Sequence record: OR699282.2 | Strand: one strand, 5' to 3' | Length of the DNA: 64,000 bases | Part shown: one piece after another, positions 27,257 through 59,530 of the stretch | Position numbering within the stretch: position 1 is the first letter of the stretch | How the letters are laid out: every line of letters begins with the position of its first letter | The notes under the pieces: generated by a model | Database searches by the model: none | What the model was told of the DNA's origin: nothing | The model's input: only the letters and a program-made list of their open reading frames with translations | Position numbers and translations under genes: made by a program

Positions 27257-27499
27257 ATGAAAGTACTGACAGAACTAGAAATGTATCATAGATTTAATAA
27301 GTACTATCATTTACTTAAGCCTATACAGAGGATTAAATGTCCATTTGAAGAGAAACAGGTTTTAATCTATGAGCACAAGTTCTTTGTATCATTAGGTACA
27401 GATCAACAAGAGTACTATTTGACGTTGTACTTGATTACATTAATAGATTTAATTCACTATAAAACCAAACAAGCTAATAAAGAGAAATATGAAAACTAA
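27257..27499 (+). CDS. family A mini-protein
   Basis: SLGTDQQE; start uncertain (27248 or 27257). Confidence 0.75.
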   Translation: MKVLTELEMYHRFNKYYHLLKPIQRIKCPFEEKQVLIYEHKFFVSLGTDQQEYYLTLYLITLIDLIHYKTKQANKEKYEN

Positions 27500-27833
27500 T
27501 ATACAACTCAAGGTATATAAATCATTTGAACATACATATATCAAAAGTAGTCTATGTAGAGATGTAATGGATTACAAGGGTAAGCCATTCACAATTACCT
27601 ATGATTCTTATGTTAGTGATTTATATATATCATTTGTTAATTACGAAAATAAAATATACAAGCACGTTGATATTAAAGATTTAAGTACTTTATCACCAGA
27701 GGAATACTTTCAGGAATCATTAGTATGGGATTTAGAGTTTCCTATGCCATTAGTACATAAGATGATAGTACTAATGAAAGAATCTAAACAGGAGCCTAAT
27801 GGTGATTATGAAGAACACACAGTTGAGTATTAA
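27489..27833 (+). CDS. family B (EExFQxS) protein
   Basis: DLSTLSPEEYFQESLVWD. Confidence 0.8.
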   Translation: MKTNIQLKVYKSFEHTYIKSSLCRDVMDYKGKPFTITYDSYVSDLYISFVNYENKIYKHVDIKDLSTLSPEEYFQESLVWDLEFPMPLVHKMIVLMKESKQEPNGDYEEHTVEY

Positions 27834-28203
27834 AAGTACTGATAATATTAAGAGTTATACAAGCTCAAGTACTGTGACAATCGAAGTGAATTCTCTTAAT
27901 GCTGGTAATACAGTAGATAAGTTCTTTATTGCTCAAGGGTACAGGAAAGATATTCATCAATATTGTTCAGTATATGGGGAGTACAATAGTACTGAAGATA
28001 TAATTTATTGGTCAACACATCAAGATTATATAACTAAAATTGGCGTTCCAGATGTTAGTACTTTATCTGAAGAAGAATACTTTCAGTACAGCTTAATATG
28101 TGATGTACCTATACCTTTAGGGTTAATCAAGGGTATACAGGAAGAGGTTCATAAGCTTAAATCCATGAGTAAAGGTACTTTCATTAGAACAGTGCAATAC
28201 TAG
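27799..28203 (+). CDS. family B protein
   Basis: DVSTLSEEEYFQYSLICD. Confidence 0.8.
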   Translation: MVIMKNTQLSIKSTDNIKSYTSSSTVTIEVNSLNAGNTVDKFFIAQGYRKDIHQYCSVYGEYNSTEDIIYWSTHQDYITKIGVPDVSTLSEEEYFQYSLICDVPIPLGLIKGIQEEVHKLKSMSKGTFIRTVQY

Positions 28204-28204
28204 C

Positions 28205-28233
28205 TTGACAGTACTTTTCATTACTGATATAGT
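28205..28233 (+). promoter_or_regulatory. sigma70 promoter, extended -10
   Basis: TTGACA-17-TATAGT with TG. Confidence 0.7.
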
Positions 28234-28262
28234 ACACTAACGTTAATCATAGGGTAAAAATT

Positions 28263-28508
28263 ATGTTAAATTTTTTAAATTTTCTTATCGTCTTGTGTAT
28301 TGTTCTTGGGATTGCACCATTTGTATTGTATTTCATGGATTCAGATGAAATGCAAAAGATGAATTGCACAAGGACAGGACAGAGTAGAGTAGAGACGATT
28401 CTTATGCCTGTTACGGTTATTGTTAATAATATGCCCATTACCAACATGGTCCCTACCCTAACGACAACGTACCAGTACTCTTGTGCTGACGGAGAGAGGT
28501 GGAGATGA
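28263..28508 (+). CDS. membrane-anchored protein
   Basis: N-terminal hydrophobic helix; C-x-RTG..YSCxDG. Confidence 0.75.
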   Translation: MLNFLNFLIVLCIVLGIAPFVLYFMDSDEMQKMNCTRTGQSRVETILMPVTVIVNNMPITNMVPTLTTTYQYSCADGERWR

Positions 28509-28816
28509 AATTTAATATAGCAAAAACATCGAGTATATGTATTTTTGGTTATGCAGAAGAGTTAGGTGATATTGACATTCTTTTGTACAAAAAGGATGGT
28601 GTTATGCATTTCAAGTACCAGGATGAAGAGGCAGACAATTATCTTTTACCTAATTTAGTACAAATGCAGGAAGAGGAATTATTCCAGTACAGCTTAGTAT
28701 ACGACATTGATATTTGCACGATGCCAGTACTAATTAGTATTCAAAAAGTGATGCTCGATATGTATGATAAGCTAATACAAGGTATGTCAGGGAGGATCAT
28801 TGAAATTGACATATAA
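28499..28816 (+). CDS. family B protein
   Basis: MQEEELFQYSLVYD. Confidence 0.8.
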   Translation: MEMKFNIAKTSSICIFGYAEELGDIDILLYKKDGVMHFKYQDEEADNYLLPNLVQMQEEELFQYSLVYDIDICTMPVLISIQKVMLDMYDKLIQGMSGRIIEIDI

Positions 28817-29012
28817 GAATATACCTAATGCATATGAAATGAAGTACAGGGAGTTTATTAAAAATGTACACACCGATCCTTTTAATATCAAAATATCAGA
28901 GTTTGATGTATTATTTTATCTAGGGTCAATAGCACAGGATCAATGCGTTGATAAGCTCATATGGTCCTTGAAAATGGAGATACAATGCAGACCCAAATAT
29001 ATAAAAAGGTAG
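28800..29012 (+). CDS. family A mini-protein
   Basis: FYLGSIAQD. Confidence 0.7.
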   Translation: MKLTYKNIPNAYEMKYREFIKNVHTDPFNIKISEFDVLFYLGSIAQDQCVDKLIWSLKMEIQCRPKYIKR

Positions 29013-29248
29013 ATTCTTTATTGTACGCTTCAAAGTACAGGGATTTTTGTTTACGAGGGGGAGAGGAAGATTTCTCTCTGAGATTATCTGAATTTAATAT
29101 GTTATTTTATCTTGGTACAAAAGATCAAGAAGATACAGTACAGAAATTTATCAAGCACCTTGAACAAAAAATTAATATGCAAATTTTGATGCTTAAGTTA
29201 CAGAATGAGATAAATGAATATGAATCCAGAAATAGTTCAGGATCTTAA
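28985..29248 (+). CDS. family A mini-protein
   Basis: FYLGTKDQE. Confidence 0.75.
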   Translation: MQTQIYKKVDSLLYASKYRDFCLRGGEEDFSLRLSEFNMLFYLGTKDQEDTVQKFIKHLEQKINMQILMLKLQNEINEYESRNSSGS

Positions 29249-29606
29249 AAAAGTAATATTTCTTTTGAATACCAGAAGTGAATTGTATACAGAGTTAAAA
29301 GAGATTAATGCATTTTATCAGAATTTTGTAATCCAAGAGATCAGTGATTTAATTACAGATGCATTATTTGAATTCTCGGAGAAATACAAAGGTTCAGAGT
29401 TCAGTGTTAAGAATGTTATTCGTCCAAGTGCAAGGAAAATTATATTATCACATTTTACATTTGACAATAAAGATTTATTCAGTCATAATCCAAGTACAGC
29501 TTTATATTTTATTCCTGATTCAGACAAAAATCATCCTATTCATTACGGATGGATTTTGTCATATATAGTACAAGGAAAGGAGTATCCTATTAAATGGAAA
29601 GATTAG
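29214..29606 (+). CDS. hypothetical protein
   Basis: ORF track, coupled. Confidence 0.7.
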   Translation: MNMNPEIVQDLKKVIFLLNTRSELYTELKEINAFYQNFVIQEISDLITDALFEFSEKYKGSEFSVKNVIRPSARKIILSHFTFDNKDLFSHNPSTALYFIPDSDKNHPIHYGWILSYIVQGKEYPIKWKD

Positions 29607-29755
29607 GGCGATTAGATTATTACACAATTAATACAAATTATTTGTTGCGTAATATAAAATCCGATTACAAAATATGGATAAAGAACAGAGATAGCATGTG
29701 TTATGAATTTTATTTAGATTATGCTATCAAACGATTTTTAAGAGAAGAACATTAA
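29594..29755 (+). CDS. hypothetical protein, 53 aa
   Basis: SD AAGGAG; fills the gap between coupled genes. Confidence 0.5.
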   Translation: MERLGRLDYYTINTNYLLRNIKSDYKIWIKNRDSMCYEFYLDYAIKRFLREEH

Positions 29756-29958
29756 TGCAAAAGATTAATACGATAACATTAAATGCATTACAGGATTCAT
29801 TATTAGATAGTATTAAGATGTATTACAATATACATTTGAAGGGTGGTATTGATAATTACGATTATTATTTGAGTTTAATTACATTTGAGCACCTTTCAGT
29901 ACAGGACAGGATTTTACATCCTACAAATCCTAGGTATCCATCGATAGGTAAATTATGA
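29755..29958 (+). CDS. hypothetical protein
   Basis: Coupled ORF. Confidence 0.65.
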   Translation: MQKINTITLNALQDSLLDSIKMYYNIHLKGGIDNYDYYLSLITFEHLSVQDRILHPTNPRYPSIGKL

Positions 29959-30503
29959 ATGAGATAGAGTTATTAGCACACAAGATAAGTACAATAATGC
30001 TTATCCTCAATAACAACCATCCTATATCGCATATAGATGGAATCCTGAGTCAGAGAACAGGTGGTAGTTTATATTTGTCCATAAACGCAGATATCGCAAG
30101 GAAATACATTGATATTGATGTTGAAATCGAATATGATACAACGGGGATTGTTGATGTAGGTGCATTAATCAGTTCAAATCCAGTATCAGCATCCCCATTG
30201 ACCAAAGGTGTTAGTACAGGATTCGAAGGGTATTTGTGGTACAATACCAATGATGATTATTTTATATATCAGCATTCCAATACAAATTATGATGAAGACA
30301 AATTTCAGTTCATAGACCCTTATGATGAAGCTGGCGTATTCCAACAATCATTAATCACAAAACCGCATGAGATGATGTATCTAATGTTATTCAGTACAAT
30401 GCATTTGAATTCATTAATTAAAGGTTTAAAATTTTATATTCAATTAAATTTAGTCCATGTAGTTTATGATTTATTAATGCAAGGATATAGTTATGAAGTA
30501 TAA
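29955..30503 (+). CDS. family B protein (MNEIELLAHK subfamily)
   Basis: DEAGVFQQSLI; paralog of 30575. Confidence 0.8.
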   Translation: MNEIELLAHKISTIMLILNNNHPISHIDGILSQRTGGSLYLSINADIARKYIDIDVEIEYDTTGIVDVGALISSNPVSASPLTKGVSTGFEGYLWYNTNDDYFIYQHSNTNYDEDKFQFIDPYDEAGVFQQSLITKPHEMMYLMLFSTMHLNSLIKGLKFYIQLNLVHVVYDLLMQGYSYEV

Positions 30504-30574
30504 AATGTTGTATACCCCAAGATATGATTTATGTTGAATTAGAAGATGATGCATCCATCAATAGGTAATAATAT

Positions 30575-31081
30575 ATGAATGAGATAGAATTATTAGCACA
30601 CAAGATTAGTACAGTAATGCTTATGCTCAAGAATAATCATTCTATGCATAAGTACATTTATATAGGTGATTTACGCATAGAAGATAGATATGATAAATTA
30701 TCGTTTTTGTTTAAAGATGAAAGTAATGCAAAAGTTTGTTTTGCAGCATTTGCCCAAGGCAATCCAGAACAAGCATCTCCTGTTATATACGAAAATAGTG
30801 AAGGGTATTTGTGGGTCAACACAAACGATTATTTCTTTTATGATTTGAAACAAAATGATGAAGTAGAAGCACGAATTGATTTAATTGATATTAGTTCAGA
30901 TTGTAGTTCTGAATTATTTCAGAAATCGTTATTATACAGTCCTCGTCAAATACATTATCTAAAGTTATTCAGTTCATTGTACGCGAATCCTTTAATTAAG
31001 GGTTTTAAATTTTATATCAAAATTCCGTACCTTTCAAACGTTTATGATATTTTGATGCAAGGATATAGTTATGAAGTATAA
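30575..31081 (+). CDS. family B protein (MNEIELLAHK subfamily)
   Basis: SSELFQKSLLY. Confidence 0.8.
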   Translation: MNEIELLAHKISTVMLMLKNNHSMHKYIYIGDLRIEDRYDKLSFLFKDESNAKVCFAAFAQGNPEQASPVIYENSEGYLWVNTNDYFFYDLKQNDEVEARIDLIDISSDCSSELFQKSLLYSPRQIHYLKLFSSLYANPLIKGFKFYIKIPYLSNVYDILMQGYSYEV

Positions 31082-31382
31082 AATGATGTATACCCCAGAT
31101 ATGATTTATGTTGAATTAGAAGATGATGACGATGGGTGGAATTTGATTTATTCAAGAAGTTCAGGTTGGTACATGGCACATTTAAATGATTCGATAGTTA
31201 CAGATTATTTTGTAGATTTCAATACATTATCCGATGAAGAATTGTTCCAACAGCAATTAGTGATTGACACGGGTGGTTATGATGTCTTATTATTAAAAAA
31301 GATACAAAAAGCTGTTATTGATTTTAAGCCCATGATATGGCAAAGGAAATATTATGACCTCGAAGTACCATACCAGCAATGA
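31071..31382 (+). CDS. family B protein
   Basis: DFNTLSDEELFQQQLVID. Confidence 0.8.
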   Translation: MKYKMMYTPDMIYVELEDDDDGWNLIYSRSSGWYMAHLNDSIVTDYFVDFNTLSDEELFQQQLVIDTGGYDVLLLKKIQKAVIDFKPMIWQRKYYDLEVPYQQ

Positions 31383-31920
31383 AATTCAGTACACCTACGC
31401 TAATGCCATCCTTATGGGACAAAAGTTAGCTTGTATTGTTGCAGCCTTATATAATGCCCAGAAATATCACAAGCGTCATTTCCACAAATGTATTGGTATT
31501 ATTCCATCGAAGTACAATACATATATTGCGTGCACGAGTCATTTTGATAAACGATTCAATACACCTGATACCCCAAATTCCCGTAGTGTTATTGGTCTTT
31601 TGGATTTCGCCCCTGGTGCTGTTATTGGAAAGAATGATTTAGAGTACGCATGGTATAATAAAAATGCCCCGTTAGTAATGGTAAAATATGATACAGAAAC
31701 GAACAAAACAATAGAGTACAATACATATAAATCAGAGGAAGAATTTTTCCAAGGTTCATTGCTTGTACCAGTGCGTTTGTTGTTTTATAATGTCCTTATT
31801 AGTACAGTACACAATAGTCCATTACACAAGAATCACAAAATTAATTTCAATTTTTGTGCTTATGCGATTGATGGTGTGTATGAGTGTTTAATGGAGGTAT
31901 TGAGTTATGAAGCTGAATAA
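31354..31920 (+). CDS. family B protein
   Basis: SEEEFFQGSLLV. Confidence 0.8.
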   Translation: MTSKYHTSNEIQYTYANAILMGQKLACIVAALYNAQKYHKRHFHKCIGIIPSKYNTYIACTSHFDKRFNTPDTPNSRSVIGLLDFAPGAVIGKNDLEYAWYNKNAPLVMVKYDTETNKTIEYNTYKSEEEFFQGSLLVPVRLLFYNVLISTVHNSPLHKNHKINFNFCAYAIDGVYECLMEVLSYEAE

Positions 31921-32248
31921 TACATTTGATATTAATAAGTTAAGAGAATGGTTTTATAGTATTGAAATTGAAGCCATCCCGTATCATAGATATGAACAAT
32001 ATAATTTAACCAGTATTGATATCAGTGAGTTGTACGCGTATTATCAAAGTGCATTAGAGATGCATAAGTTATTTTTGAGTACAGATTTTGTTCTAAATTA
32101 CAATTTTGAGGAATTTAAAAATTATAATTTAGTACAGAAATATGTAGTAGCAAAGTACATGTACAATCAAGGAATCAAAGGTTGCATCGAATTCAATACC
32201 GTTCTTGTTTTAGTTGAGGTAATTTTATGCACCGCATGTCTGATTTAG
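31907..32248 (+). CDS. hypothetical protein
   Basis: Coupled ORF. Confidence 0.7.
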   Translation: MKLNNTFDINKLREWFYSIEIEAIPYHRYEQYNLTSIDISELYAYYQSALEMHKLFLSTDFVLNYNFEEFKNYNLVQKYVVAKYMYNQGIKGCIEFNTVLVLVEVILCTACLI

Positions 32249-32733
32249 AGTTCAGTTTAGATGCAGCATTTAAATTTGTTCACAAAATAGAAACAATATA
32301 CAGTACATTATGTGCAATAACATCAGTATCAAAAGAGCTTGATGTTGGTGAAAGGTATCAGGTGTGGAATAATTCATTTTTTAATAAAGAACATTCTTCG
32401 ACGGCATTTTATATTTTAGCATTTAATCCCAGCAATTGTTACCCAGAGAAGCATGAACGTTATCCGAATGACGACATGTGGTTTGAGTACAAAGAAGATT
32501 CTGATATGTCGTCAATTGTAGTTCCTGATGATTTTAATGCACAAGATTTAACAGAAGAGTGGTGGTTCCAGCAGAATTTAGTACATGATGATATTGATTT
32601 ATTTTTCTATATTGCATTTAAAATGCTTTATCACAACAATATAGTTAAAGAAAGTGTATCGTTTTCATGTCTATATATTGATGATTTGTACAATGAAATT
32701 CAAATAAACATGCCCAGAACGCCTGTATCGTAA
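32227..32733 (+). CDS. family B protein
   Basis: DLTEEWWFQQNLVHD. Confidence 0.8.
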   Translation: MHRMSDLEFSLDAAFKFVHKIETIYSTLCAITSVSKELDVGERYQVWNNSFFNKEHSSTAFYILAFNPSNCYPEKHERYPNDDMWFEYKEDSDMSSIVVPDDFNAQDLTEEWWFQQNLVHDDIDLFFYIAFKMLYHNNIVKESVSFSCLYIDDLYNEIQINMPRTPVS

Positions 32734-32758
32734 GATATGGGCTTTTTTCGTTTTGGTA

Positions 32759-32787
32759 TTGACATAGAAGACCAAAGCTGTTATCAT
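32759..32787 (+). promoter_or_regulatory. sigma70 promoter, extended -10
   Basis: TTGACA-17-TATCAT with TG. Confidence 0.7.
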
Positions 32788-32815
32788 GTGTATTCATTTT
32801 AAAGGAGAACATATA

Positions 32816-33328
32816 GTGAGTTTCATAATCCCAAGTACATACGAAGATGCATCAAGTGCAGTTCATAAGATTCATTATATTTTTAATTTAATTATTAGAT
32901 CTGCAAAAATTAAAATGTATGCACCTCTTGTGACAAATAATCGAAATGAAGAAATTTTTATTAGCACAGACAAAATTATTTTTCCATATTTCAATGAAGA
33001 TAGATTGTGGTTCATACATTTAGCTGCATTACAAAAATATAAGATGTCAATTCGTAATAATTTGGTTATACCGTTATATCATCCCGATATTGGAGAGGAT
33101 GAGTATTTTCAGTACAGCACAGTACACCGCCATGAAGATATCTTTGCTGCTATGCTTATTGCTAAATTGAACACCGTTGATTTGGAGCAGTACAAATACA
33201 ATAATAAATCATGTAAGATCATAATCCCTGCATTCATAGCTCTTTATGATTATGTGGTGCATAACAAAAAAGATGATACATATGCTTTCAATGAAGAGTA
33301 TTTGAATTTTTTTAAGGAGAAAATATGA
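32816..33328 (+). CDS. family B protein
   Basis: GEDEYFQYSTVH; GTG start behind AAGGAG. Confidence 0.8.
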   Translation: MSFIIPSTYEDASSAVHKIHYIFNLIIRSAKIKMYAPLVTNNRNEEIFISTDKIIFPYFNEDRLWFIHLAALQKYKMSIRNNLVIPLYHPDIGEDEYFQYSTVHRHEDIFAAMLIAKLNTVDLEQYKYNNKSCKIIIPAFIALYDYVVHNKKDDTYAFNEEYLNFFKEKI

Positions 33329-33864
33329 GCAGTACAACAGTATCAAAAGTACAGAAAGCAATGTCATTCAATGAAATTGGTACATTTAAAGATAAGATCA
33401 TTGATTGCCTTGAATACATGATTTGTAGTAATATCGAAAGTATCGAGATATTTAACAAGACAAATCGCTCTTACCATATGATGTACATTGCAAACAATAA
33501 TGGTATCATTCCATTTATTTCGGATAGTACAATATGGTACGCATGTGATACGAAAAAATACACAGCAGGTTCGTATAGCTTAGGGTCACATACGGAATTG
33601 ATTATTCCTGAGCATTGTATGCAAGAAGAAGAATATTTTCAAATGCAATGTATACATTCACCATTAGTGTTGTTTAGTTTATATATTATACCTTATATCA
33701 CCAAATGTGTTCATGAGAATAAAGCTCCGTGGAATCATGAATTTGTATCGTTGAAGTTATTGTATAATGTATTAGTAGAATATTATGATTACAGGCACAA
33801 TGGTACAATCAGTGATGTATGGGAATTTGAATCGCTAAGGGTGAAAACATACACAGGTGAATGA
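33325..33864 (+). CDS. family B protein
   Basis: MQEEEYFQMQCIH. Confidence 0.8.
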   Translation: MSSTTVSKVQKAMSFNEIGTFKDKIIDCLEYMICSNIESIEIFNKTNRSYHMMYIANNNGIIPFISDSTIWYACDTKKYTAGSYSLGSHTELIIPEHCMQEEEYFQMQCIHSPLVLFSLYIIPYITKCVHENKAPWNHEFVSLKLLYNVLVEYYDYRHNGTISDVWEFESLRVKTYTGE

Positions 33865-34480
33865 TATGACCAGAATTAAAATGTATGATTTGATGCAGTA
33901 CAGTAAAATTGCCATTCCAGTGCTTAATAAAGTGCTGGATGCATTCATTGCCAAATACCCTGAGAATTCAGTGTTATGTATTCCATTTAGTGTTCCAGAT
34001 AAAGATGATATATTCCAAGTGAATGTCAGTACACGTGGTATTACATTACAGCAGAAATACATGGATACGGAATATTATGGAATAAAGTTGGATTCAGTAC
34101 AGGGTTCAAAATCAGCCTATGATTTTTTTGTTCCTAATAATATAGAGTCATGGGAAACAAACATTTCAAAGAAAGATGAAAATGATGTTCCTATTAGTGG
34201 TGTGTTCAACAATAAAGTTTTTTATTATTACGAAACCGACAAATTCCCTGAAGAGTTATATTACAATTCAGAAATGAATGAAGATGTAGATGCATTCATG
34301 TTTCAATTATCTTTAGTACATGATATCATTGATGTTCAAGAGTTAAGAGCAGAAATCAATTTAGCTAAAGAGTTATCGGACATGCTGCCACCGTTTAGTA
34401 TGCTTTTTTGTGAAGGTGGTTATTTTTCAAAAGAAGTGTTTGAACATTTCGTAGATGTTGTAAAAGGGTTGGATATATAG
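33857..34480 (+). CDS. family B protein
   Basis: VDAFMFQLSLVHD. Confidence 0.8.
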   Translation: MNDMTRIKMYDLMQYSKIAIPVLNKVLDAFIAKYPENSVLCIPFSVPDKDDIFQVNVSTRGITLQQKYMDTEYYGIKLDSVQGSKSAYDFFVPNNIESWETNISKKDENDVPISGVFNNKVFYYYETDKFPEELYYNSEMNEDVDAFMFQLSLVHDIIDVQELRAEINLAKELSDMLPPFSMLFCEGGYFSKEVFEHFVDVVKGLDI

Positions 34481-34481
34481 T

Positions 34482-34676
34482 ATGCTTACAGTTGATGTTA
34501 AACAAAAATACCGTAAGTTTGATTGGTTCACCGACAGTTTCCAGCTTGAATTATTACATTTGAATATCTGTGAAACATTATGTGCAGAAACACAAGATGA
34601 ATTTGATGATAGAGTGATGAACATAGTAATGCTTTCTTGCTTTAAACATTTTGGTTATTTTTTCGGACAGAATTGA
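34482..34676 (+). CDS. hypothetical protein
   Basis: Coupled ORF. Confidence 0.65.
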   Translation: MLTVDVKQKYRKFDWFTDSFQLELLHLNICETLCAETQDEFDDRVMNIVMLSCFKHFGYFFGQN

Positions 34677-34684
34677 GGTAAAAA

Positions 34685-35203
34685 ATGCATCAACACAAGC
34701 ATCATTCATATGATTTTGCAATTAACATTATGAAGTTCATTCGAGCGTTGGAGGATGGGAAGCTTAGTCATAAGTACAGAAAAGAGGGTAACAATTGGTT
34801 CAGAAATGATGATGATGAGTTCAGAAGTCATAAGATTGTTTACAGCAATAATTACAGTGCCAATTACCTACAAGATGTAGTGATGTGTTTTGAATACGTG
34901 TTGCAGTTCAGGGGTTCAATCCAGGATGAGTTGATGGAGCACATGTACATCAGATACCTTCCAATGCTCAAAGATGAAAATGTATTATTAAATTCAATAT
35001 ACCAACGAGTTCGTGAAATTGAGTGCAGGGATATATTAGATACAGAAGAATCGTATTTCCAGCAATCCCTGATTTATGCACCTGATTTATTACAGGTACA
35101 TAATTTGTTTAATACATTACGTCAAAACATCAGTACAGACATATTTTTGTCATTATCGGATTATGATACATTTGTCAAAGATTTAGAGGAAATAGGTTTA
35201 TGA
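34685..35203 (+). CDS. family B protein
   Basis: DTEESYFQQSLIY. Confidence 0.8.
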   Translation: MHQHKHHSYDFAINIMKFIRALEDGKLSHKYRKEGNNWFRNDDDEFRSHKIVYSNNYSANYLQDVVMCFEYVLQFRGSIQDELMEHMYIRYLPMLKDENVLLNSIYQRVREIECRDILDTEESYFQQSLIYAPDLLQVHNLFNTLRQNISTDIFLSLSDYDTFVKDLEEIGL

Positions 35204-35544: not shown

Positions 35545-35554
35545 GGAAAGTACA

Positions 35555-36688: not shown

Positions 36689-36884
36689 AGACGTTTCATT
36701 TTTACAGGCCGCAGGGGGTCAAAAAAATTTCCGCTGAAAAACATGCTAAGGTATATGTTTAATATAAAGTTTTATATTGTGTTTTTCAGAGTACAGTCCA
36801 TGTTTCCTGAAACAAAAAATACCCCGCCCCCGCAACGTGCTCCTTATATTGGAGTTTACCTTATTAATTATAGTAGAGATTAAG

Positions 36885-37974: not shown

Positions 37975-37983
37975 GATTATAAA

Positions 37984-38475: not shown

Positions 38476-38476
38476 A

Positions 38477-51922: not shown

Positions 51923-51959
51923 ACCAGGGGTTGACTCTGGTTTTTTTGTATGATACATT
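51923..51959 (+). terminator. overlapping terminator and promoter
   Basis: ACCAGGG-GTTGA-CTCTGGT-T6; TTGACT-17-TACATT with TG. Confidence 0.6.
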
Positions 51960-51977: not shown

Positions 51978-52529
51978 ATGAACTACAATCATGATCTTTT
52001 TACATTATGTGCATCCAAATGTGTTGAAGGATGGGCAGATAAAATCAATACCATAATTCATCGATATCTCGTCTTTAGTTCCCGTGCACGAAGTGAGGGG
52101 GCTATGGATTTCAAATATACACTATCTATTGATGGTGTAACTATCCATGCAGACGAAGAACGTCTGAACATTAATTTGTATGATTCCTGTGTATTTGCTA
52201 TTCACCAAAAGATGGGGAAAGGATGGGGTTGTAATAACATTAACTCCAAAGCTATCTTTTGGGTTGGTCACCATCAGACAGTACTTGATCCTTCAATCAA
52301 ATCTAATCTTTTATCCGATAATATGGTTTATGATTTATTGTACTCCGAAGAACAACATTTTCAGTTAAGTACATTACATGATCTGGCACAGTACGAGGAT
52401 TGTTACAAAACATTAGAACTATGCCATTCCCTTGAACTTAAAGATAAATTGATACAAGTTTACCCTTCATTCTTTCATGAAGAAGTACAAAGTACACTAG
52501 ATCATATTTTATATGGATACGATAAATGA
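51978..52529 (+). CDS. family B protein
   Basis: SEEQHFQLSTLHD. Confidence 0.8.
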   Translation: MNYNHDLFTLCASKCVEGWADKINTIIHRYLVFSSRARSEGAMDFKYTLSIDGVTIHADEERLNINLYDSCVFAIHQKMGKGWGCNNINSKAIFWVGHHQTVLDPSIKSNLLSDNMVYDLLYSEEQHFQLSTLHDLAQYEDCYKTLELCHSLELKDKLIQVYPSFFHEEVQSTLDHILYGYDK

Positions 52530-53128
52530 GAAAAAGTTATCAAGAAGCTATTGACTTAATTCGTGAAGTTATCAAGGTGGCTCCTGCTGCTATTGAGTTC
52601 AAGAAGTCCATATACAAGAAGTATGGTTCAATGTCGAGTATGTGCTTTCAAAAGAAACGTAGAGCATTCACTACCCAGTACTGGAATGATTCTATCATCC
52701 TGAGCAATGAGACTCAGCGTATTTTAACACTAGAATCTGAACCTAATGAGTACGGGGAAGGGAACATTTGTGTACCTGATTATGATGAAATTAACTTCAA
52801 CTGCGGTGATTTTGAAACAACATTATTACTTCATGAGGGTTATCCAGAAGGTGATGTATTAGCTGAGTACAATCCAAAAACTAAAATTCTCAAAAGAGGA
52901 ATCCAGTTCACTATTAATAACAAAGATGATGTTCAAGCAGCACTGATGCAACTGAGTACAAGTGAACCTATCACTATTAGTGTAGAAGAGTTATGGGGAA
53001 TTATTTCAGTACTCAATGAGTGCTACAAAGTAAAATCATTGCGTAAACACAGCATTATATTACATACCAATATGGCAAATATAAAATGTAAGCACATTCA
53101 AGAAATGGTGGTTCCAGATGGACTTTAA
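52526..53128 (+). CDS. hypothetical protein, possible divergent family B
   Basis: VQAALMQLSTS. Confidence 0.75.
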   Translation: MRKSYQEAIDLIREVIKVAPAAIEFKKSIYKKYGSMSSMCFQKKRRAFTTQYWNDSIILSNETQRILTLESEPNEYGEGNICVPDYDEINFNCGDFETTLLLHEGYPEGDVLAEYNPKTKILKRGIQFTINNKDDVQAALMQLSTSEPITISVEELWGIISVLNECYKVKSLRKHSIILHTNMANIKCKHIQEMVVPDGL

Positions 53129-53702
53129 AGAAATTGAAAGTAAATTAAAGTACTTCAAAGATATCAAACTTCTTTGGAAAAAGTATAAAGTTGATTACAA
53201 TTTCAGTGATGATGAGACAATAAAATACATTGAGATTAATATCAAAATCAAGTTCAAGAATAATAATTATGGTGAAGTAACCTTAAATCATACTGGTATA
53301 TCACTCAAGGACTATGATGGTACAACACTCGCATATTTTGACTTCACACCAGAACCAGGTGAAACACTACTTAGTGAGATAAATTCCTATGACATGGAAG
53401 TGTTCGGCGGGAATCCGTTACTGTTCCGACTTTCTGAAGAGTGGAGTGAAGAGTACTACACTTACAAAGATGGTGTAGTACTTGACATTCATGGAGAAGT
53501 TGTGAATGACTTGGAAGAACGTTTGTTCCAAGAATTGTGTGTTTCAAATACTTCATATGCATACAATCATATCCTTGACATGTTTGATTTATATAGTAAA
53601 ATAGATGCTGAAATGAAGGCACATGGTATTCATTACCTTACAATTAACGACTATGCTCAACTCGAAACCGCTGTGAAAGCATTGACTAAAGTACTGAAAT
53701 AG
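53118..53702 (+). CDS. family B protein
   Basis: LEERLFQELCVS. Confidence 0.75.
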   Translation: MDFKEIESKLKYFKDIKLLWKKYKVDYNFSDDETIKYIEINIKIKFKNNNYGEVTLNHTGISLKDYDGTTLAYFDFTPEPGETLLSEINSYDMEVFGGNPLLFRLSEEWSEEYYTYKDGVVLDIHGEVVNDLEERLFQELCVSNTSYAYNHILDMFDLYSKIDAEMKAHGIHYLTINDYAQLETAVKALTKVLK

Positions 53703-53711: not shown

Positions 53712-54125
53712 ATGAAACTGTATCATGCGAGTACTGTAAAAATTGATAACTTTTATATCCCGTATGGTGGTCTTCATATGGGAGGTAAACACAGTGCTTT
53801 GGAAGCTGCATTACGCAAGCTGAGAAGCCCACTGAACGTAGTAGACGCATGTACAGTATACTTGCATACCTTAGAAGTTGATGTTGATAACGTGCTTCTG
53901 TGTGAAGATTTAGGCAGTGATGATGAGTGGCGTTCACTTATTGAGAATTGCACTGCTCAAGGTTATGATGCTGTTCAGTACAAAAATGATTACGAGCCAG
54001 ACAATGTTCCTAGCTTTATGATTTGGGATGCATCTAAAGTTCGCATCATTGAAGTTGATGCTATGCATATGGATGAAGCTGAAATGATTATCGAAGATTT
54101 TCTTGATGAATATGAAGGTGTATAA
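53712..54125 (+). CDS. putative ADP-ribosyltransferase-fold protein (ART-PolyVal-like)
   Basis: LYHAS..LHMG..A..GYDAVQYKNDYE..SFMIWDASKVRI pattern. Confidence 0.5.
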   Translation: MKLYHASTVKIDNFYIPYGGLHMGGKHSALEAALRKLRSPLNVVDACTVYLHTLEVDVDNVLLCEDLGSDDEWRSLIENCTAQGYDAVQYKNDYEPDNVPSFMIWDASKVRIIEVDAMHMDEAEMIIEDFLDEYEGV

Positions 54126-54661
54126 TGACTGACCCGATGGTAGCACTGGCACGTACTAAGTTACTATTAAAGATTGGTGAGATTTTTACGGTTCTTCTGT
54201 CCAATAATATTGATATTACTGAGCTAGATATTAAGCAACCGTGGGAAGTGACTATGTTCTCGGCGTTCCACCGATTGTCATATAAAGGTGAAAGTGTTCT
54301 TGATTTTAACCCTAAAGCAAAATTCATAGATTATGCTGCGTTGTACAGAGAGTTGCACCGAAATATTTATTCCGGTTGTATAACCAATAACTTCAAAGAA
54401 ATTAAAGTTCAAACTGCATCACATGAGTTCAATGATTTACTTTATCCAGAATTTAATCTAACGGAAGAATTACTCTTTCAGTACTCGTTAATTCTCACAA
54501 ATCTCGAAACGCTAGAGTACTACAAAGAGTTAGTAGATATTTTTATGAATACACGTCTTTCAAAAGATATTGTGATATTCTGGTATACAGAGCATGTTAC
54601 GGAGGAATTGCTTACTGAATTTCTTCTAAATATGACAGCTATAAAGGAGAAGTTATGTTAG
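54125..54661 (+). CDS. family B protein
   Basis: LTEELLFQYSLIL. Confidence 0.8.
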   Translation: MTDPMVALARTKLLLKIGEIFTVLLSNNIDITELDIKQPWEVTMFSAFHRLSYKGESVLDFNPKAKFIDYAALYRELHRNIYSGCITNNFKEIKVQTASHEFNDLLYPEFNLTEELLFQYSLILTNLETLEYYKELVDIFMNTRLSKDIVIFWYTEHVTEELLTEFLLNMTAIKEKLC

Positions 54662-55128
54662 ATATTTTAGGAAACATCGACACTGCAAATTATTTTATTC
54701 AAGATGCATTGTTTAATACAGTACAACAAGGTTTAGAAGTTCACCACAATGTTTATCAGGGTGATGGATATTTTGTTGATATTATCGAGACACGTAAAAA
54801 TACATTTAATGTTAACATTACGACGCTTGGAAGACAGAACATTGCACGAATTTTAGTAAGTAAAGATGAAATAGTACTGAGATACAGTGCTAAGTTTATG
54901 TTGACTTATAAGAAAAAAACTGATATGTTCAGTACTAATTTATTTGATGAGCCATTTGACCTTGAAGATATTGAAGCTACTTTCTTTACTCAAAGTACTA
55001 TGGTAAAATACACTGATGTTCAATTTTCTGCTGATGTAATGTCGGAAACATTACAAATGATCAAGGTATTATTTTATGCATTTGAGCAATTTAGAGAAGA
55101 AAGAAACAAGGTTAACAACCACAGATGA
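54655..55128 (+). CDS. hypothetical protein, possible divergent family B
   Basis: IEATFFTQSTMV. Confidence 0.75.
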   Translation: MLDILGNIDTANYFIQDALFNTVQQGLEVHHNVYQGDGYFVDIIETRKNTFNVNITTLGRQNIARILVSKDEIVLRYSAKFMLTYKKKTDMFSTNLFDEPFDLEDIEATFFTQSTMVKYTDVQFSADVMSETLQMIKVLFYAFEQFREERNKVNNHR

Positions 55129-55489
55129 ACTAATAGAGGCGATCACTAAGGAGTCAAAATACCACAAAGGGATTCGTCTATATTTTATAGATATTGGTTC
55201 AATGGAAGGCATATACATTTATGGTTCACAATCTTTATCTTATGATGTAATGCCAAAAAAACATGTAAAAATCTTTTTAGGTTCAGATAAAAAAACTTTC
55301 TTGACAATTAATGATAAAAACGTTATTATGAATTCGTTGGGTCATGATAAGGTGGAAATTGATCTAAACACACTGGAGGATATTGATTTTTTTCAATACG
55401 AGTGTTTAGGTGTTGACTTACATGGCATTAGTAGCGATATGATAAAATCATTAATCAAATATTTCGAAGGTGTTCATAAATGTATCTAA
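55076..55489 (+). CDS. family B protein
   Basis: LEDIDFFQYECLG. Confidence 0.75.
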   Translation: MHLSNLEKKETRLTTTDELIEAITKESKYHKGIRLYFIDIGSMEGIYIYGSQSLSYDVMPKKHVKIFLGSDKKTFLTINDKNVIMNSLGHDKVEIDLNTLEDIDFFQYECLGVDLHGISSDMIKSLIKYFEGVHKCI

Positions 55490-55977
55490 CTAAATCAATG
55501 AAAAATTCATTTGATAAAATCAAGAGTTGTCTTGATGGGGAAAATATTACAAGTGTTACACAAACTGCTGACCAAATTCAAAGCAGTTCAAGTGATTGTA
55601 CTGTTATTTTAGGTTTACATAGTCTACGTTTATCAATAGTAAATAATATTGACAACACTGCTATTGTAATCACACCATGCCATATTCAAAATGAGAATGG
55701 TGTATATCTTCATCACATGGGAACAGTATTTCATATTTTCAATACAAACGAAAACATTGTTAAGGAATACAAATCTCTTAATATTGATTCAGGTGAATTA
55801 TTTCAAATGAGTACTTTGTACTCATGTAATTTTACAGATACTTCATGTATTTTGCCATTTTTCTTGGAAATTATTAAGAAAATGGAAAATTTAAAACGTG
55901 AATACAATAAAGAAATGGTTCCTGAAGCTATATTAAATATTACTAATGCTATAGAGAAGTATAATGCAGTGACTTAA
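55480..55977 (+). CDS. family B protein
   Basis: IDSGELFQMSTLYS. Confidence 0.8.
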   Translation: MYLTKSMKNSFDKIKSCLDGENITSVTQTADQIQSSSSDCTVILGLHSLRLSIVNNIDNTAIVITPCHIQNENGVYLHHMGTVFHIFNTNENIVKEYKSLNIDSGELFQMSTLYSCNFTDTSCILPFFLEIIKKMENLKREYNKEMVPEAILNITNAIEKYNAVT

Positions 55978-56019: not shown

Positions 56020-56493
56020 ATGGAGATTAAAACTGTTGAAAATGGGAAAATTGATGACATTTTAGAGTTGGACGCATTCAAAGTTCATGATATAATGTTT
56101 AATGTGAAGGACATTATTCAATGTCTATTTTTGTGTAGCAAGACAATGCATGATTTTTTTCACAACCCAAATACTAACGTTTTTATACTAACAATCAGTA
56201 CTGAAAACTCGTTTATCATGGGTATGCCTATGAGTACAAATGAACAATATATTGATTGTGTTATTCGTAATAACGATAGTATTACGCCACAATCTGAAGT
56301 ACGTAAAAAGAAAAACACCTACACAATCAAAGATGATAAAATTATGATGTGCTGTAGTAAAGGGTTTATATTAGATAATTTTATCATCAAAGACAGTTAT
56401 CACGACTTTAAAGTGTCTGAAAATCAATCCAATGTAGTTCTTTATGCGAGTGACATAGAAAGTCTAACAGTTAAAGATCCCAGTTTGGAGTAA
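56020..56493 (+). CDS. hypothetical protein
   Basis: SD AAGGA. Confidence 0.75.
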   Translation: MEIKTVENGKIDDILELDAFKVHDIMFNVKDIIQCLFLCSKTMHDFFHNPNTNVFILTISTENSFIMGMPMSTNEQYIDCVIRNNDSITPQSEVRKKKNTYTIKDDKIMMCCSKGFILDNFIIKDSYHDFKVSENQSNVVLYASDIESLTVKDPSLE

Positions 56494-56495
56494 GT

Positions 56496-56627
56496 ATGGC
56501 TAAGAAAGTAAACAATTTCGTACAGAAACACATGAATGAGTTTAACAAGCCTCAGACACATGTTGATCGTAAGAAAGAAATGAAAAATGGTAAAGTAAAA
56601 CACAAGTCGAGATTTATTCTCGACTAA
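56496..56627 (+). CDS. small basic protein, 43 aa
   Basis: NFVQKHMNEFNKPQTHVDRKK; SD GGAG; hairpin terminator 56605-56635 overlaps the stop. Confidence 0.7.
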   Translation: MAKKVNNFVQKHMNEFNKPQTHVDRKKEMKNGKVKHKSRFILD

Positions 56628-56656
56628 TTTTTTGTCTAAATTTATGGAGATTTTAT

Positions 56657-57508
56657 ATGTTAGATAGCACTGACTTTCGCAATTTCAAAAAGTATTCAGT
56701 TCTTGAACATATAAACGAATTTCTAAATTCTACTACACCATTTGGCATCAGTGCGTTCGACTCATACGATGGGTATAGAATCTTCTCATGCAATGACTTT
56801 CAAATTTCCGTCAAAAAAGGTTTTACAAAAGAAGTTGCAATTCGTGATGTAGTACTGTATAGCGATTCTTCCATTTCTTACTGTCATGATGCGAACAATT
56901 TTGAATCTCTTTCAACACCTAATTGTTCATACTACAAATCCCATGACACGATGATGTACAAAGAACAACATATCAATGGTGTTTCGTTCTATAAAACGAA
57001 CAGTGATAAGTCATATACATCGAGAGATGATTTTGGAAAGTACACATGTACTATGCACGCGGATAATGAAAAAACAAGCTACACACATTCATTCGAGTCC
57101 AAATTCAAAGAGAGTGACTTTTCAAATATCACTATTCAAGAACAAGTTACAGAAGAAGGTGTTGTATATCGTAGTACTGCATTCTTTCGCATGAAAGATA
57201 TTGTCACTGGTAGACCAATGATGTACAATATTGACATATATATGAAAGGTGATATATCCGAAGTAGTGATTAGTACTGGTTATCGTGAAAAATATACAGT
57301 TACGATGGAATCACCAGATGCATCACTAGTTCACCTCTTTAACAATTTATACACATTCCAATTCGAACTTAGTTTCGAACCCAATGAATATCAAATATTC
57401 GATGTATTAAAAAGTAATATTATTAATAAGTTAGAATATTACTACAAGTTAGGTGGGAAAATGAGCATAGTTAATACTATGTTACATAACATAAAAGAAA
57501 CATTATAA
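56657..57508 (+). CDS. hypothetical protein
   Basis: 283 aa, SD GGAG. Confidence 0.8.
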   Translation: MLDSTDFRNFKKYSVLEHINEFLNSTTPFGISAFDSYDGYRIFSCNDFQISVKKGFTKEVAIRDVVLYSDSSISYCHDANNFESLSTPNCSYYKSHDTMMYKEQHINGVSFYKTNSDKSYTSRDDFGKYTCTMHADNEKTSYTHSFESKFKESDFSNITIQEQVTEEGVVYRSTAFFRMKDIVTGRPMMYNIDIYMKGDISEVVISTGYREKYTVTMESPDASLVHLFNNLYTFQFELSFEPNEYQIFDVLKSNIINKLEYYYKLGGKMSIVNTMLHNIKETL

Positions 57509-57523
57509 ATTGGAGGATTTGGG

Positions 57524-57817
57524 ATGGATACTAAATTCAAAGTTATATTTAAAACTAAGCCGTATATTCCGCATACAGCAGAACGTTTTATACCACATGG
57601 TGCAGAGGAAATTATTCACCATGATGGTACAAAGTTATATCTAGTGCCATGTTCATATGAACGTGCAGTAGAAATGTTACTCATGAATTCTAAATTATGT
57701 ACAAACAAGTACATTAGCTACTTATACAATGAACATATTTTAGATTTTAATGATGAAAATATGTTTATTCTAGCAATTGAAGATTTTAATAATTGGTACA
57801 ACATTATTAAAATCTGA
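57524..57817 (+). CDS. hypothetical protein
   Basis: SD GGAGG. Confidence 0.75.
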   Translation: MDTKFKVIFKTKPYIPHTAERFIPHGAEEIIHHDGTKLYLVPCSYERAVEMLLMNSKLCTNKYISYLYNEHILDFNDENMFILAIEDFNNWYNIIKI

Positions 57818-57887
57818 TAAAAATATTGTGAACATATTAAATCTTTATGATATAATGTTCACATCTTTTTTGATAATGGAGATATAG

Positions 57888-58274
57888 ATGAATACAAGTT
57901 CAATCCTAAAAGCAATTGGTGGTGTTTTACTTATTGAAGTGAAAGGTGAACCAAAACTATGCTGTTTGGAAGATATGAAGAATACAAAACACTTCAGTAC
58001 TGGTCAGATTTTTAATGCCATTCGTGTTCTAAATGATAAATCAATCGCTGATTATGGTAAAGTTTGGCCTGTATATCAAAACGCAGAGGGTGATATCAGT
58101 TCTGACTGGAAAACCATCGAAGCAGTTCGACAAAGTTGCGATAGTGACTGGGACTTTATTGTCGAAGTATGTGATCAACTACAAGAAGATGTTCCAGAAA
58201 TTGTCGAACGAAAAGAAGTCCTAGCACGACTTGAAAAATTCCGTCACGGAACACTACAGTATGACACAATCTAA
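57888..58274 (+). CDS. hypothetical protein
   Basis: Extended -10 promoter at 57848-57856, SD GGAG. Confidence 0.8.
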   Translation: MNTSSILKAIGGVLLIEVKGEPKLCCLEDMKNTKHFSTGQIFNAIRVLNDKSIADYGKVWPVYQNAEGDISSDWKTIEAVRQSCDSDWDFIVEVCDQLQEDVPEIVERKEVLARLEKFRHGTLQYDTI

Positions 58275-58323
58275 TCTGCTTATTAAAAATATCTAATTAA
58301 CATTATATAAAAGGAATTTAAAA

Positions 58324-58629
58324 ATGGAAGACAATGGAATGAAATTTGATATGTTTGAAGGTGTACCAGAGTTCGATTTCAATAAACTTGAAAATGGTGA
58401 AGAATCAGAACTAGTAAGTGTTACACTAAAATCAGATACCAAAAAGAAATATTCCCCATCAGTTCGTTCACGTTCTCAAGAAGAATATGAAACCTTCATT
58501 GAGAGTATTCATTACGAAACGTTCCATCATGCAGATGGTACTCCGTATGAAGTTCGTGTTACAGTACTGAAGCCTGAAGTAAACCCAATGGAAAATCTAC
58601 GTCCTGTTTACTGCTGGGCAAGCCACTAA
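58324..58629 (+). CDS. acidic hypothetical protein
   Basis: SD AAGGA; terminator 58638-58669. Confidence 0.8.
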   Translation: MEDNGMKFDMFEGVPEFDFNKLENGEESELVSVTLKSDTKKKYSPSVRSRSQEEYETFIESIHYETFHHADGTPYEVRVTVLKPEVNPMENLRPVYCWASH

Positions 58630-58681
58630 TAAACCAAAGGACGGGATATAATATCTCGTCTTTTTTTTTGTCTGGAGATAT

Positions 58682-59530
58682 ATGAAACTTTATCTAATCG
58701 TTGACTACAGTAAGGGTTATTATGACTACGCAGAAGAATCTGAAGGGTATTGCTCGTCTACTAATGTCAATGTACGCACCAGTAGTACACATGAGCATGA
58801 ATCTATTACAAACCTAAAAGATTTCATCGCATATCGAGCATTTGAAAAGAATTTCTGTCGTAGTAGATATTCGAAGTTTGAGTACCCGTTAATTGATGTT
58901 CCTGATGAATTGATGTTCCAGTTAATGCTCACTGGAGTACAAGATTATGATTACATCGCGTACAATCACATTACTAAGAAAATTTATATCGGTACGTCAA
59001 CACATGACATTTCTATGTATGCATCATGCCCCGATGATCGAATGAATGATAGAAAATCATACTATAGTGGATCAGTTGGTTCAAATGATTCATTAAATAA
59101 AAATTTATTCTTTGAGTACGAGTTTGATAATCATCGAGGGAAAAAAGACCGAGAAGATTATTGTACTGAAATTGATAGTACCAATGGATATGAAGAAGTG
59201 AAAGAAGCGATAATGCCATATATCCTTGACAAGTACTACAAAGATTTTCAGTACTGTAGTAATTTTCTAATCCGAAATTCTATCATAATCGGTCGTCAAA
59301 GTACTGCATTCTCTAAGTACTACAATGATTCCCCTGTTGCTGAAAATGAAAACTGTAATATTCTCTCAATCCCACGTGAAGATATGGTATTCATGTTCAC
59401 ATCTTTCATTGAAGATGATGAGTTGTATGTAAAAAACAAGCACAGGTTCATGCCAAGTAAGATTGAGGTTATGAGAAGCTTAAGTGCAGATATCTTAACT
59501 AATTTCACTGAAAAAACAGAATACAACTGA
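58682..59530 (+). CDS. hypothetical protein with an N-terminal family B-like motif
   Basis: DVPDELMFQLML. Confidence 0.8.
   Translation: MKLYLIVDYSKGYYDYAEESEGYCSSTNVNVRTSSTHEHESITNLKDFIAYRAFEKNFCRSRYSKFEYPLIDVPDELMFQLMLTGVQDYDYIAYNHITKKIYIGTSTHDISMYASCPDDRMNDRKSYYSGSVGSNDSLNKNLFFEYEFDNHRGKKDREDYCTEIDSTNGYEEVKEAIMPYILDKYYKDFQYCSNFLIRNSIIIGRQSTAFSKYYNDSPVAENENCNILSIPREDMVFMFTSFIEDDELYVKNKHRFMPSKIEVMRSLSADILTNFTEKTEYN

Follow-up and report, generated by a model that had tools for sequence, protein, structure and literature searches.

What does a phage hold in dozens of small, tandem, same-strand genes that all bear the label 'hypothetical protein'? The question is raised by the left end of the genome of Escherichia phage BAU.Micro_ELP-22 (ELP-22; sequence record OR699282.2, 373,488 bp, genus Asteriusvirus, PBECO4/RaK2-like), where every gene between 27.5 and 59.5 kb is so annotated. 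The window analyzed here is the left 64 kb (64,000 nucleotides) of this genome; positions 37,000–47,000 are 100% identical to ELP-22 at the same coordinates and 88–98% identical to the relatives SP27, PBECO4, 121Q-like phages, phAPEC6 and Sharanji, the host listed for the latter being E. coli K-12 MG1655. The original prediction, made from the letters of the window, had described about 50 proteins with a constant docking motif on variable bodies. The proteins concerned, called here the EE-FQ family, are tandemly encoded, small and acidic, and share a near-invariant motif of 14 residues, (S/T)EExhFQxS(T/L)hxD. They are best read, with moderate confidence, as a lineage-specific, tandemly expanded superfamily of mostly acidic, non-virion proteins of ~100–200 amino acids (aa), whose likeliest role is that of an early host-interaction repertoire.

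The motif is confined to one strand and far exceeds expectation. Within the window, 21 plus-strand instances of the peptide pattern EE-x-h-FQ contrast with none on the minus strand, and the corresponding DNA pattern for EE-x-x-FQ (GARGARNNNNNNTTYCAR) occurs 23 times, always on the plus strand, versus 0.18 expected (0 of 100 shuffles reach 23). Both synonymous codons are in use at the E, F and Q positions, so that conservation acts at the protein level and a DNA-level explanation of the motif is ruled out. A hidden Markov model (HMM) of the module around the motif, iterated over the open reading frames (ORFs) of the window, converges on 38 ORFs with E values of 1e-6 to 1e-20 and matches no minus-strand ORF and no reversed or shuffled decoy. 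Leave-one-out full-length profiles bring in four further ORFs, leading to 42 supported members, all on the plus strand, between 27,489 and 55,977 (Table 1). Beyond these, two ORFs are borderline (41489–42025 and 48705–49271) and five are suggestive by comparison with 506 decoys, giving a total range of 42–49. No statistical support was obtained with strict leave-out profiles against decoys for the ORFs at 47003, 35200 and 42931, and the two ORFs of ~280 aa at 56657–57508 and 58682–59530 score no better than decoys. A pooled profile including database representatives drifted to the long class defined below (32 members only) and was left out of the count.

The EE-FQ ORFs of the array are genuine genes and a real conserved family, as had been claimed, yet the proposed census of ~47 clear and 5 divergent ORFs has to be lowered to 42, or 49 at most. 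The array likewise ends at 55,977 rather than 59,530, an end that had been set by the two ~280-aa ORFs, and the supported ORFs occupy 20.2 kb or 32% of the window (38% if doubtful ORFs are counted in), not nearly half of it. The position of the motif, announced at ~40–60 aa from the C-terminus, holds, FQ lying 39–74 aa before the end in all 42 supported members. Family members are acidic (median isoelectric point (pI) 4.9, charge −9) and not hydrophobic.

Two architectures are found among the 42 members: 30 are long, with an N-terminal helix, a β-sheet and a C-terminal helical module, and 12 are short and devoid of the N-terminal helix. Relatedness outside the motif depends on the class and on the sensitivity of the search. 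When the module is removed, BLASTP splits 38 N-terminal parts into 31 components, while 31 of 38 C-terminal parts fall into one component. Iterated profile searches on sequences stripped of the module still connect 16 members of the window, and 106 of the 174 sequences of the family, at the cost of one decoy hit. A search of 1.84 billion proteins with a profile of 32 long members retrieves only 163 cluster representatives, mostly matched over their full length. By these profile criteria the long-class bodies are mutually homologous. Hence, the view that the N-terminal parts are largely unrelated stands at the level of BLASTP and between classes, and fails within the long class. Similarly, the N-terminal helix ascribed to many members is conserved in the long class and missing from the short one. 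In 181 aligned family sequences, conservation comprises S/T2, an aromatic residue at position 3, A10 and I13 in this helix, Y/F36 in the first strand, a Y-I-x-Y strand, and above all the motif, with F in 181, Q in 178, S in 161 and each E in 147–150 sequences; the polar E, E, Q and S are conserved above any hydrophobic core position. The short class has a post-motif helix unlike that of the long class and resembling that of a second genomic cluster (see below). Comparison by hhalign of the short class plus second cluster with the long class aligns 14 columns, which are the motif (probability 92.6%, E 4.7e-7), so that a constant motif on variable bodies is an apt description between classes. 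Paralogues are deeply diverged (~15% identity). Since short and long genes alternate in one tandem array, common descent with extreme divergence would be the simplest history of the two classes.

An AlphaFold2 model of the long-class protein 39853–40296, built from the paralogue alignment, is a compact single domain of high confidence (predicted local distance difference test score (pLDDT) 92.5; predicted template-modeling score (pTM) 0.86). Its N-terminal part consists of a helix (residues 3–21), seven strands between residues 28 and 89, and a short helix (90–94); its C-terminal part consists of helix 100–106 (E-E-Y-Y-F-Q-N), a five-residue turn, helix 112–126, strand 132–135 (FYLD) and helix 136–143. 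The motif forms a short capped helix within this domain (pLDDT ~97), an arrangement at odds with an appended linear docking peptide. For a 121Q homologue with 33% identity, the BFVD model can be superposed with a template-modeling (TM) score of 0.90, and distant structural matches are found in SP27, RaK2, GAP32, Serratia phage BF and Yersinia phage fHe-Yen9-03 (11–22% identity, probability ~0.4–1.0). A second model, of the divergent long-class protein 49839–50417, reaches pLDDT 61, with residues 39–106 not predicted and a Foldseek search without useful match; it shows the N-terminal helix, last hairpin, motif helix and C-terminal helices in the same order. Together, the models support a single predicted fold across the long core subgroup. 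The fold may be new, because the confident model has no neighbor among solved structures (Foldseek against the PDB, best E 1.4); frataxin, p32 and type III chaperones come up in Foldseek as weakly similar, but at TM scores below 0.2 these similarities are not evidence.

From these data, the long class can be pictured as one compact α/β domain, in which the N-terminal amphipathic helix and the C-terminal module would pack on an antiparallel β-sheet, whose sequence and probably also strand number would vary among members. The C-terminal module would be built of the capped helix (S/T)EExhFQ, the tight turn S(T/L)hxD, an amphipathic helix, the FYLD strand and a last helix, the motif being the most constrained element of the family and the sole one recognizable in the short class.

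Comparison with phAPEC6 gives dN/dS ratios (ω) of 0.1–0.5 in nearly all orthologous pairs. Pooled over 40 pairs, ω is 0.36 for the first 25 residues, 0.35 for the body, 0.15 for the module (the lowest value) and 0.23 for the C-terminal tail, with no sign of pervasive positive selection. Purifying selection acts on all parts of the proteins and is strongest in the motif region. By reciprocal best hits, 30575–31081 and 40607–41080 have no phAPEC6 orthologue. The phAPEC6 orthologues of 39,853–41,492, 45,778–46,140 and 46,525–47,019 are only 64–79% identical, with synonymous divergence (dS) of 0.4–0.8, the flanking genes being 95–100% identical; this pattern suggests that individual array genes are replaced by recombination between Asteriusviruses.

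Why the motif should be so constrained has two answers, each of which fits the data. As a folding element, its S/T and two acidic residues at the helix start, invariant aromatic residue, tight turn and D before the next helix would provide capping and a core anchor; as a functional site, its E, E, Q and S are conserved above the core, its conserved residues lie on one face by helical periodicity, and it persists in proteins without the N-terminal helix. In the second case, the E-E/F-Q/S face may be a shared docking surface for one common partner, to which the variable bodies would bring cargos or targets, a possibility we rate as somewhat unlikely. The residue counts given above speak for it, as do the lowest ω in the module and the persistence of the motif where all else, N-terminal helix included, is unalignable; in the model, moreover, E100, E101, F104, S107 and T108 are predicted to be spaced i, i+3/i+4 on one helix face, with the variable residues 102 and 106 opposite. 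It is weakened by the location of the motif in a well-ordered helix of a compact domain and by its composition, an S/T with two acidic residues opening a helix and a D ahead of the following one being ordinary capping patterns. Pfam searches reveal no similarity to F-box, PRANC or other adaptor motifs. The original prediction had itself allowed that the motif could merely form the core of a fold common to all members, which would then share no partner; this applies in part only, the motif being inside a compact domain, yet its polar residues are conserved above any hydrophobic core position.

In a stronger version of the docking idea, the face would bind a single partner, such as a host core machine or the phage HslV-like peptidase, and at least 60 paralogues would constitute an adaptor repertoire for one effector. 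We consider this doubtful, and know of no bacteriophage in which a set of adaptors is described as linking numerous host targets with a single effector. The suggested analogy with poxvirus F-box/ankyrin adaptors is not sustained: no F-box, PRANC or ankyrin match was found by Pfam searches of 10 + 27 members, and in the confident model the motif is not a separate terminal box.

The family extends beyond the window and the genus. A second cluster in ELP-22 (record positions 275,862–312,663) encodes at least 15 clear-motif proteins of 117–180 aa that are more divergent, bringing the family to ~60 or more of the 744 annotated phage genes (~8%) over two clusters. In a related unannotated genome, the strict DNA pattern is found in three of seven 50-kb pieces, the counts being 25 for the main array, 11 for a second location and 2 for the remaining piece. 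Klebsiella phage RaK2, of another genus, has at least 31 members in a syntenic 40 kb (ORF363–ORF439), upstream of the methylase and cytidylyltransferase genes that also come after the array in the window, at 60.8–61.8 kb. With 45303–45788 as a tblastn query, matches come only from jumbo phages of Escherichia, Salmonella and Klebsiella (45 phage records). Window proteins belong to PHROG families 9317, 12674, 33775, 38467, 19795, 13866, 15629 and 35972 (E down to 1e-131), all of 'unknown function'; the superfamily is split across many PHROGs, with weak cross-hits through the motif region only. Sequence searches of Pfam (10 + 27 members), NCBIfam and the PDB with single proteins and profiles give nothing significant; a PDB match to the phage baseplate wedge protein gp16 (7kh1) is borderline (E 0.87). 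The literature searched contains no description of the superfamily or of its motif, nor of the two clusters and the predicted fold; a share of ~10% paralogues in RaK2 was mentioned in passing (PMC3622015). Same-strand tandem paralogues, detectable homology among them, and conservation accompanied by copy-number variation make the family a tandemly expanded viral multigene family.

Such an expansion could also be evolutionary ballast, i.e. tandem duplicates that take up room in an enlarged capsid without a function of their own. That jumbo genomes may grow by tandem duplication was proposed by Hua et al., who pointed to >30 similar genes arrayed in 121Q (PMC5646251), and copy number differs between close relatives. 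This explanation is nevertheless improbable in view of the ω values of 0.1–0.5 in nearly every orthologous pair, with constraint in every protein region, and of the retention of ancient paralogues (~15% identity) in two genera with conserved synteny.

The genomic setting informs on when the proteins may be made. The array lies just inside a left terminal repeat of 21,279 bp. Positions 1–21,279 are taken as the left copy of a direct terminal repeat because the right copy is identical from record position 352,210 onward (100% over the 2,291 bases compared, window 1–2,291); the length assumes that this identity continues to the end of the record. The terminal repeat of fEgEco12 was shown to be 20,993 bp and those of relatives are ~21 kb (PMC13070987). 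By tblastn, the fEgEco12 homologue of 45303–45788 has an almost identical coordinate, which implies that the record starts at the physical genome end. Array genes overlap or abut, with few intergenic gaps, and the strongest σ70-type promoter matches fall in those few gaps, often right after terminator-like hairpins (an additional hairpin is at 56,605). This layout supports operons that would be read from host-type σ70 promoters. A literature search found no Asteriusvirus transcriptome. PA5oct, a distant relative, relies on host RNA polymerase and has its terminal-repeat genes among the early ones (PMC7318152), and the authors of the CBB genome suspected an early host-takeover region of small genes (PMC5259590).

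The phAPEC6 orthologues of the array are gp404c–gp466c of that phage, whose virion proteome comprises 62 proteins identified by mass spectrometry, none listed between gp347 and gp549 (PMC7247149, Table 1), and none from gp396c–gp466c. In RaK2, all virion proteins map to two other gene clusters (PMC3622015), away from ORF363–ORF439. A capsid-targeting signal had been suggested, and the motif or the N-terminal helix could in principle direct proteins into the prohead, as for T4 internal proteins; phAPEC6 capsids do hold an inner body (PMC7247149) and many members have an N-terminal amphipathic helix. The absence of the orthologues from the phAPEC6 virion proteome leads us to reject capsid targeting as very improbable; in addition, the motif lies internally in the C-terminal part, unlike a cleavable signal at the N-terminus.

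Equally implausible is a protease recognition site of the potyviral NIa (tobacco etch virus-type) or 3C-type, with cleavage after Q. Such sites have an acidic P6, an aromatic P3 and Q at P1. The resemblance is positional only, although the genome encodes proteases at 80.9, 84.9 and 85.8 kb; these are annotated as head-maturation and HslV-type enzymes and as 'protease', not 3C-like (annotations were read, no scan for a 3C-like fold being made). Because the motif is predicted to be helical within the fold instead of forming an exposed extended linker, and P1′ varies (L, Y, N, Q, G, M, E), the resemblance is judged coincidental. Finally, that the proteins are colicin-immunity-like nuclease inhibitors, the motif helix and the next one being helices I and II of Im9-type proteins, is hardly credible: the borderline hit obtained on the colicin E9 immunity protein with the short-class profile (E 0.98, 42 profile positions; both small and acidic) is effectively refuted at the sequence level by hhalign against eight immunity proteins (probability 1.9% for the short and 0.1% for the long class), and no member matches the Pfam immunity family.

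There remains the reading favored at the outset, a host-interaction repertoire, proposed because of the position, the organization and the analogy with known systems. Long polycistronic operons would apparently be read from host-type σ70 promoters, and the proteins would be made before, or independently of, virion assembly and stay cytoplasmic; the genes are kept by purifying selection and apparently swapped as mosaic blocks between related phages. The constant scaffold would then present diversified surfaces to many targets, as early takeover or anti-defense binders. Early expression, the role as cytoplasmic binders and the choice of the binding surface are what we infer, whereas the family with its motif, size and spread, the selection on it, its absence from virions and the predicted fold of one subgroup are shown.

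Several observations weigh against this reading. The total of promoter-like sites in the window is not above chance, and 'early' timing is deduced from the position and from promoter matches. Neither homology nor structure searches (Pfam, PHROGs, Foldseek, PDB, NCBIfam) gave a match that points to a function. With polar motif residues conserved above core hydrophobics, a functional site fits at least as well as a folding role. The body of the second model is poor (pLDDT 61), which limits the one-fold evidence to the long core subgroup, and long and short classes align over 14 columns only. Lastly, binders engaged in an arms race might be expected to show positive selection on their bodies, and pooled dN/dS reveals none there.

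Table 1. Features of the left 64 kb of ELP-22 in window coordinates (HMM, E value with the module HMM; LOO, E value with a leave-one-out full-length profile; TG, TG extension)
Feature	Position	Strand	Evidence
Left direct terminal repeat (context)	1–21279	+	dense small genes, most with own promoter-plus-hairpin unit
Family A array (context), 25 tandem ~70-aa basic proteins, LGTNYQE motif	21506–27255	+	BLASTP cluster, alignment
Short-class member	27489–27833	+	HMM 3.1e-11; FQ at aa 74
Short-class member	27799–28203	+	HMM 1.3e-13; FQ at aa 95
σ70-like promoter, gap 28204–28262	28205–28233	+	11/12 match, TG
Short-class member	28505–28816	+	HMM 3.8e-16
Two family A copies within array (28839–29012, 28985–29248)	28839–29248	+	BLASTP cluster, alignment
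Long-class member	29955–30503	+	LOO 5.3e-11
Long-class member	30575–31081	+	HMM 3.1e-10; no reciprocal best hit in phAPEC6
Short-class member	31071–31382	+	HMM 1.5e-16
Long-class member	31354–31920	+	HMM 3.2e-13
Long-class member	32227–32733	+	HMM 2.3e-12
Terminator-like hairpin (32721–32742), then σ70-like promoter (32759–32787)	32721–32787	+	gap 32734–32785
Long-class member	32786–33328	+	HMM 3.6e-11
Long-class member	33325–33864	+	HMM 1.4e-16
Long-class member, divergent motif	33866–34480	+	LOO 1.4e-4
Long-class member	34685–35203	+	HMM 5.2e-13
Long-class member	35555–36106	+	HMM 4.6e-11
Short-class member	36924–37262	+	HMM 1.3e-10
Short-class member	37262–37618	+	HMM 2.4e-13
Short-class member	37615–37974	+	HMM 7.7e-13
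Long-class member	37984–38475	+	HMM 2.5e-19
Long-class member	38477–38947	+	HMM 2.3e-17
Long-class member	38944–39384	+	HMM 1.6e-17
Long-class member	39387–39878	+	HMM 1.3e-18
Long-class member, confidently modelled	39853–40296	+	HMM 7.6e-20; AlphaFold2 pLDDT 92.5, pTM 0.86
Short-class member	40293–40607	+	HMM 2.5e-12
Long-class member	40607–41080	+	HMM 6.2e-13; no reciprocal best hit in phAPEC6
Long-class member	41046–41492	+	HMM 2.1e-13
Borderline member	41489–42025	+	strict leave-out profile E 0.0016; no decoy as good
Family A copy within array	42256–42390	+	BLASTP cluster, alignment
Long-class member	42380–42940	+	HMM 2.9e-13
Short-class member	43539–43901	+	HMM 1.8e-15
Short-class member	43891–44226	+	HMM 2.1e-11
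Long-class member	44234–44770	+	HMM 9.6e-11
Consensus σ70 promoter, gap 44771–44829	44767–44796	+	12/12 match, TG
Long-class member	44830–45306	+	HMM 1e-14
Long-class member	45303–45788	+	HMM 6.7e-17; tblastn orthologues in 45 phage records
Short-class member	45778–46140	+	HMM 1.2e-15
Short-class member	46124–46537	+	HMM 3.3e-7
Long-class member	46537–47019	+	HMM 1.3e-15
Long-class member	47542–48105	+	HMM 2.6e-10
Long-class member	48098–48616	+	HMM 1.1e-11
Terminator-like hairpin (48615–48635), then σ70-like promoter (48649–48677)	48615–48677	+	11/12 match, TG
Borderline member	48705–49271	+	strict leave-out profile E 0.004; no decoy as good
Suggestive member, motif by eye	49268–49852	+	E 3; 21/506 decoys as good
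Long-class member, divergent body, second modelled protein	49839–50417	+	HMM 1.4e-13; AlphaFold2 pLDDT 61
Suggestive member	50417–50845	+	E 0.44; 2/506 decoys as good
Long-class member	50842–51351	+	LOO 7e-6
Long-class member	51335–51916	+	HMM 4.7e-11
Terminator-like hairpin in intergenic gap	51923–51941	+	intergenic hairpin
Long-class member	51978–52529	+	HMM 1.7e-6
Suggestive member	52526–53128	+	E 0.57; 2/506 decoys as good
Long-class member, divergent	53118–53702	+	HMM 3.6e-8
Long-class member	54125–54661	+	HMM 2.2e-7
Suggestive member	54655–55128	+	E 0.8; 4/506 decoys as good
Suggestive member	55076–55489	+	E 0.65; 2/506 decoys as good
Last supported member	55480–55977	+	LOO 2.3e-4

The neighboring family A had been described as interleaved with the array and as a potential partner. 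The BLASTP cluster counts 28 members: three copies do lie within the EE-FQ array, but 25 are adjacent to it at 21.5–27.3 kb. Most of these proteins are basic, the median pI being 8.8; they share an LGTNYQE motif whose Q is invariant, and belong to phrog_4148, of unknown function. Family A co-localizes with the EE-FQ family in both genera, with 11 interleaved copies in RaK2; there is no one-to-one pairing with EE-FQ genes, and it is absent from the second cluster. As a distant relative of the EE-FQ family it is rejected (hhalign probability 0.1%).

The second EE-FQ cluster is mixed with seven tRNA genes, a DNA methyltransferase gene, two 'virion structural protein' genes and the phage sigma factor gene. 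Two isolated EE..FQ ORFs are also present outside both clusters (record positions): that at 107,479–107,880 (133 aa, motif 42 aa from the C-terminus) has family-like proportions and that at 67,631–68,320 has not. Within and after the main array, non-family ORFs at 53712–54125 and 56020–59530 encode proteins of 137, 157, 283, 97, 128, 101 and 282 aa with no significant Pfam match, a weak match of the 283-aa ORF to DUF3081 (E 0.0017) being below the cut-off. The six that were scanned against PHROGs each fall into their own unknown-function PHROG; orthologues exist in phAPEC6, and similar-sized ORFs lie at the same position in RaK2.

A near-identical unit stands in front of many small genes of the terminal repeat and is composed of a −35-like element, AGTACTGTATAAT, TTTACAT and then a G-rich hairpin; the core TATAAT..TT..CAT was counted in 20 copies, all before 21 kb. 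The palindrome AGTACT occurs 255 times in the window versus ~17–21 expected, a 12- to 15-fold excess, the runner-up among palindromic hexamers being enriched 2.4-fold only. The terminal repeat has 137 copies, many inside the promoter units. Beyond 21.5 kb, 116 copies lie within coding sequence and are distributed over the three reading frames (47/32/37), which indicates a DNA-level signal. AGTACT-free stretches span 21,271–26,072 and 28,726–37,000, the latter with 8.3 kb within the EE-FQ array.

RaK2-like jumbo phages are being put forward as therapeutic agents against E. coli, Klebsiella and Salmonella, and with this family a sizeable share of their 'dark matter' comes down to one question. 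The natural series of a constant motif on varied bodies offers a probe for the roles of early jumbo-phage genes, and bears on whether large phages diversify scaffolds like large eukaryotic viruses.

Among known systems, a functional analogy may be drawn with the SUKH, Imm and colicin Im immunity arrays, which are likewise tandem sets of small acidic proteins that vary the surfaces of one constant scaffold; unlike them, the EE-FQ proteins have no Pfam immunity or Foldseek match and reach 1.9% probability against Im proteins by hhalign. Host-takeover modules by or in long terminal repeats include SPO1 gp37–60 and the T5 pre-early region. The ELP-22 array resembles these and the terminal-repeat genes of PA5oct, a phage dependent on host RNA polymerase (PMC7318152), in its repeat-bearing genome end, its many small orphans and its predicted host-type promoters. 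It differs in that those modules consist mostly of unrelated genes, whereas the array is one superfamily. Similar in organization are the MGF110/360/505 multigene families of African swine fever virus (ASFV), the poxvirus ankyrin/PRANC and Bcl-2-like families, and the arrays of phages G and 121Q (PMC5646251), all with dozens of same-strand paralogues close to one end of the genome that are strongly diverged outside a small conserved core, vary in copy number between close relatives, have no virion role and are presumed to interact with the host. No sequence or structural relationship links the EE-FQ proteins to the ASFV and poxvirus families, and they are single small domains rather than repeat proteins with an appended box. 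The EE-FQ family thus joins the lineage-specific multigene families of large viruses, earlier mentions of tandem arrays in 121Q having been made in passing.

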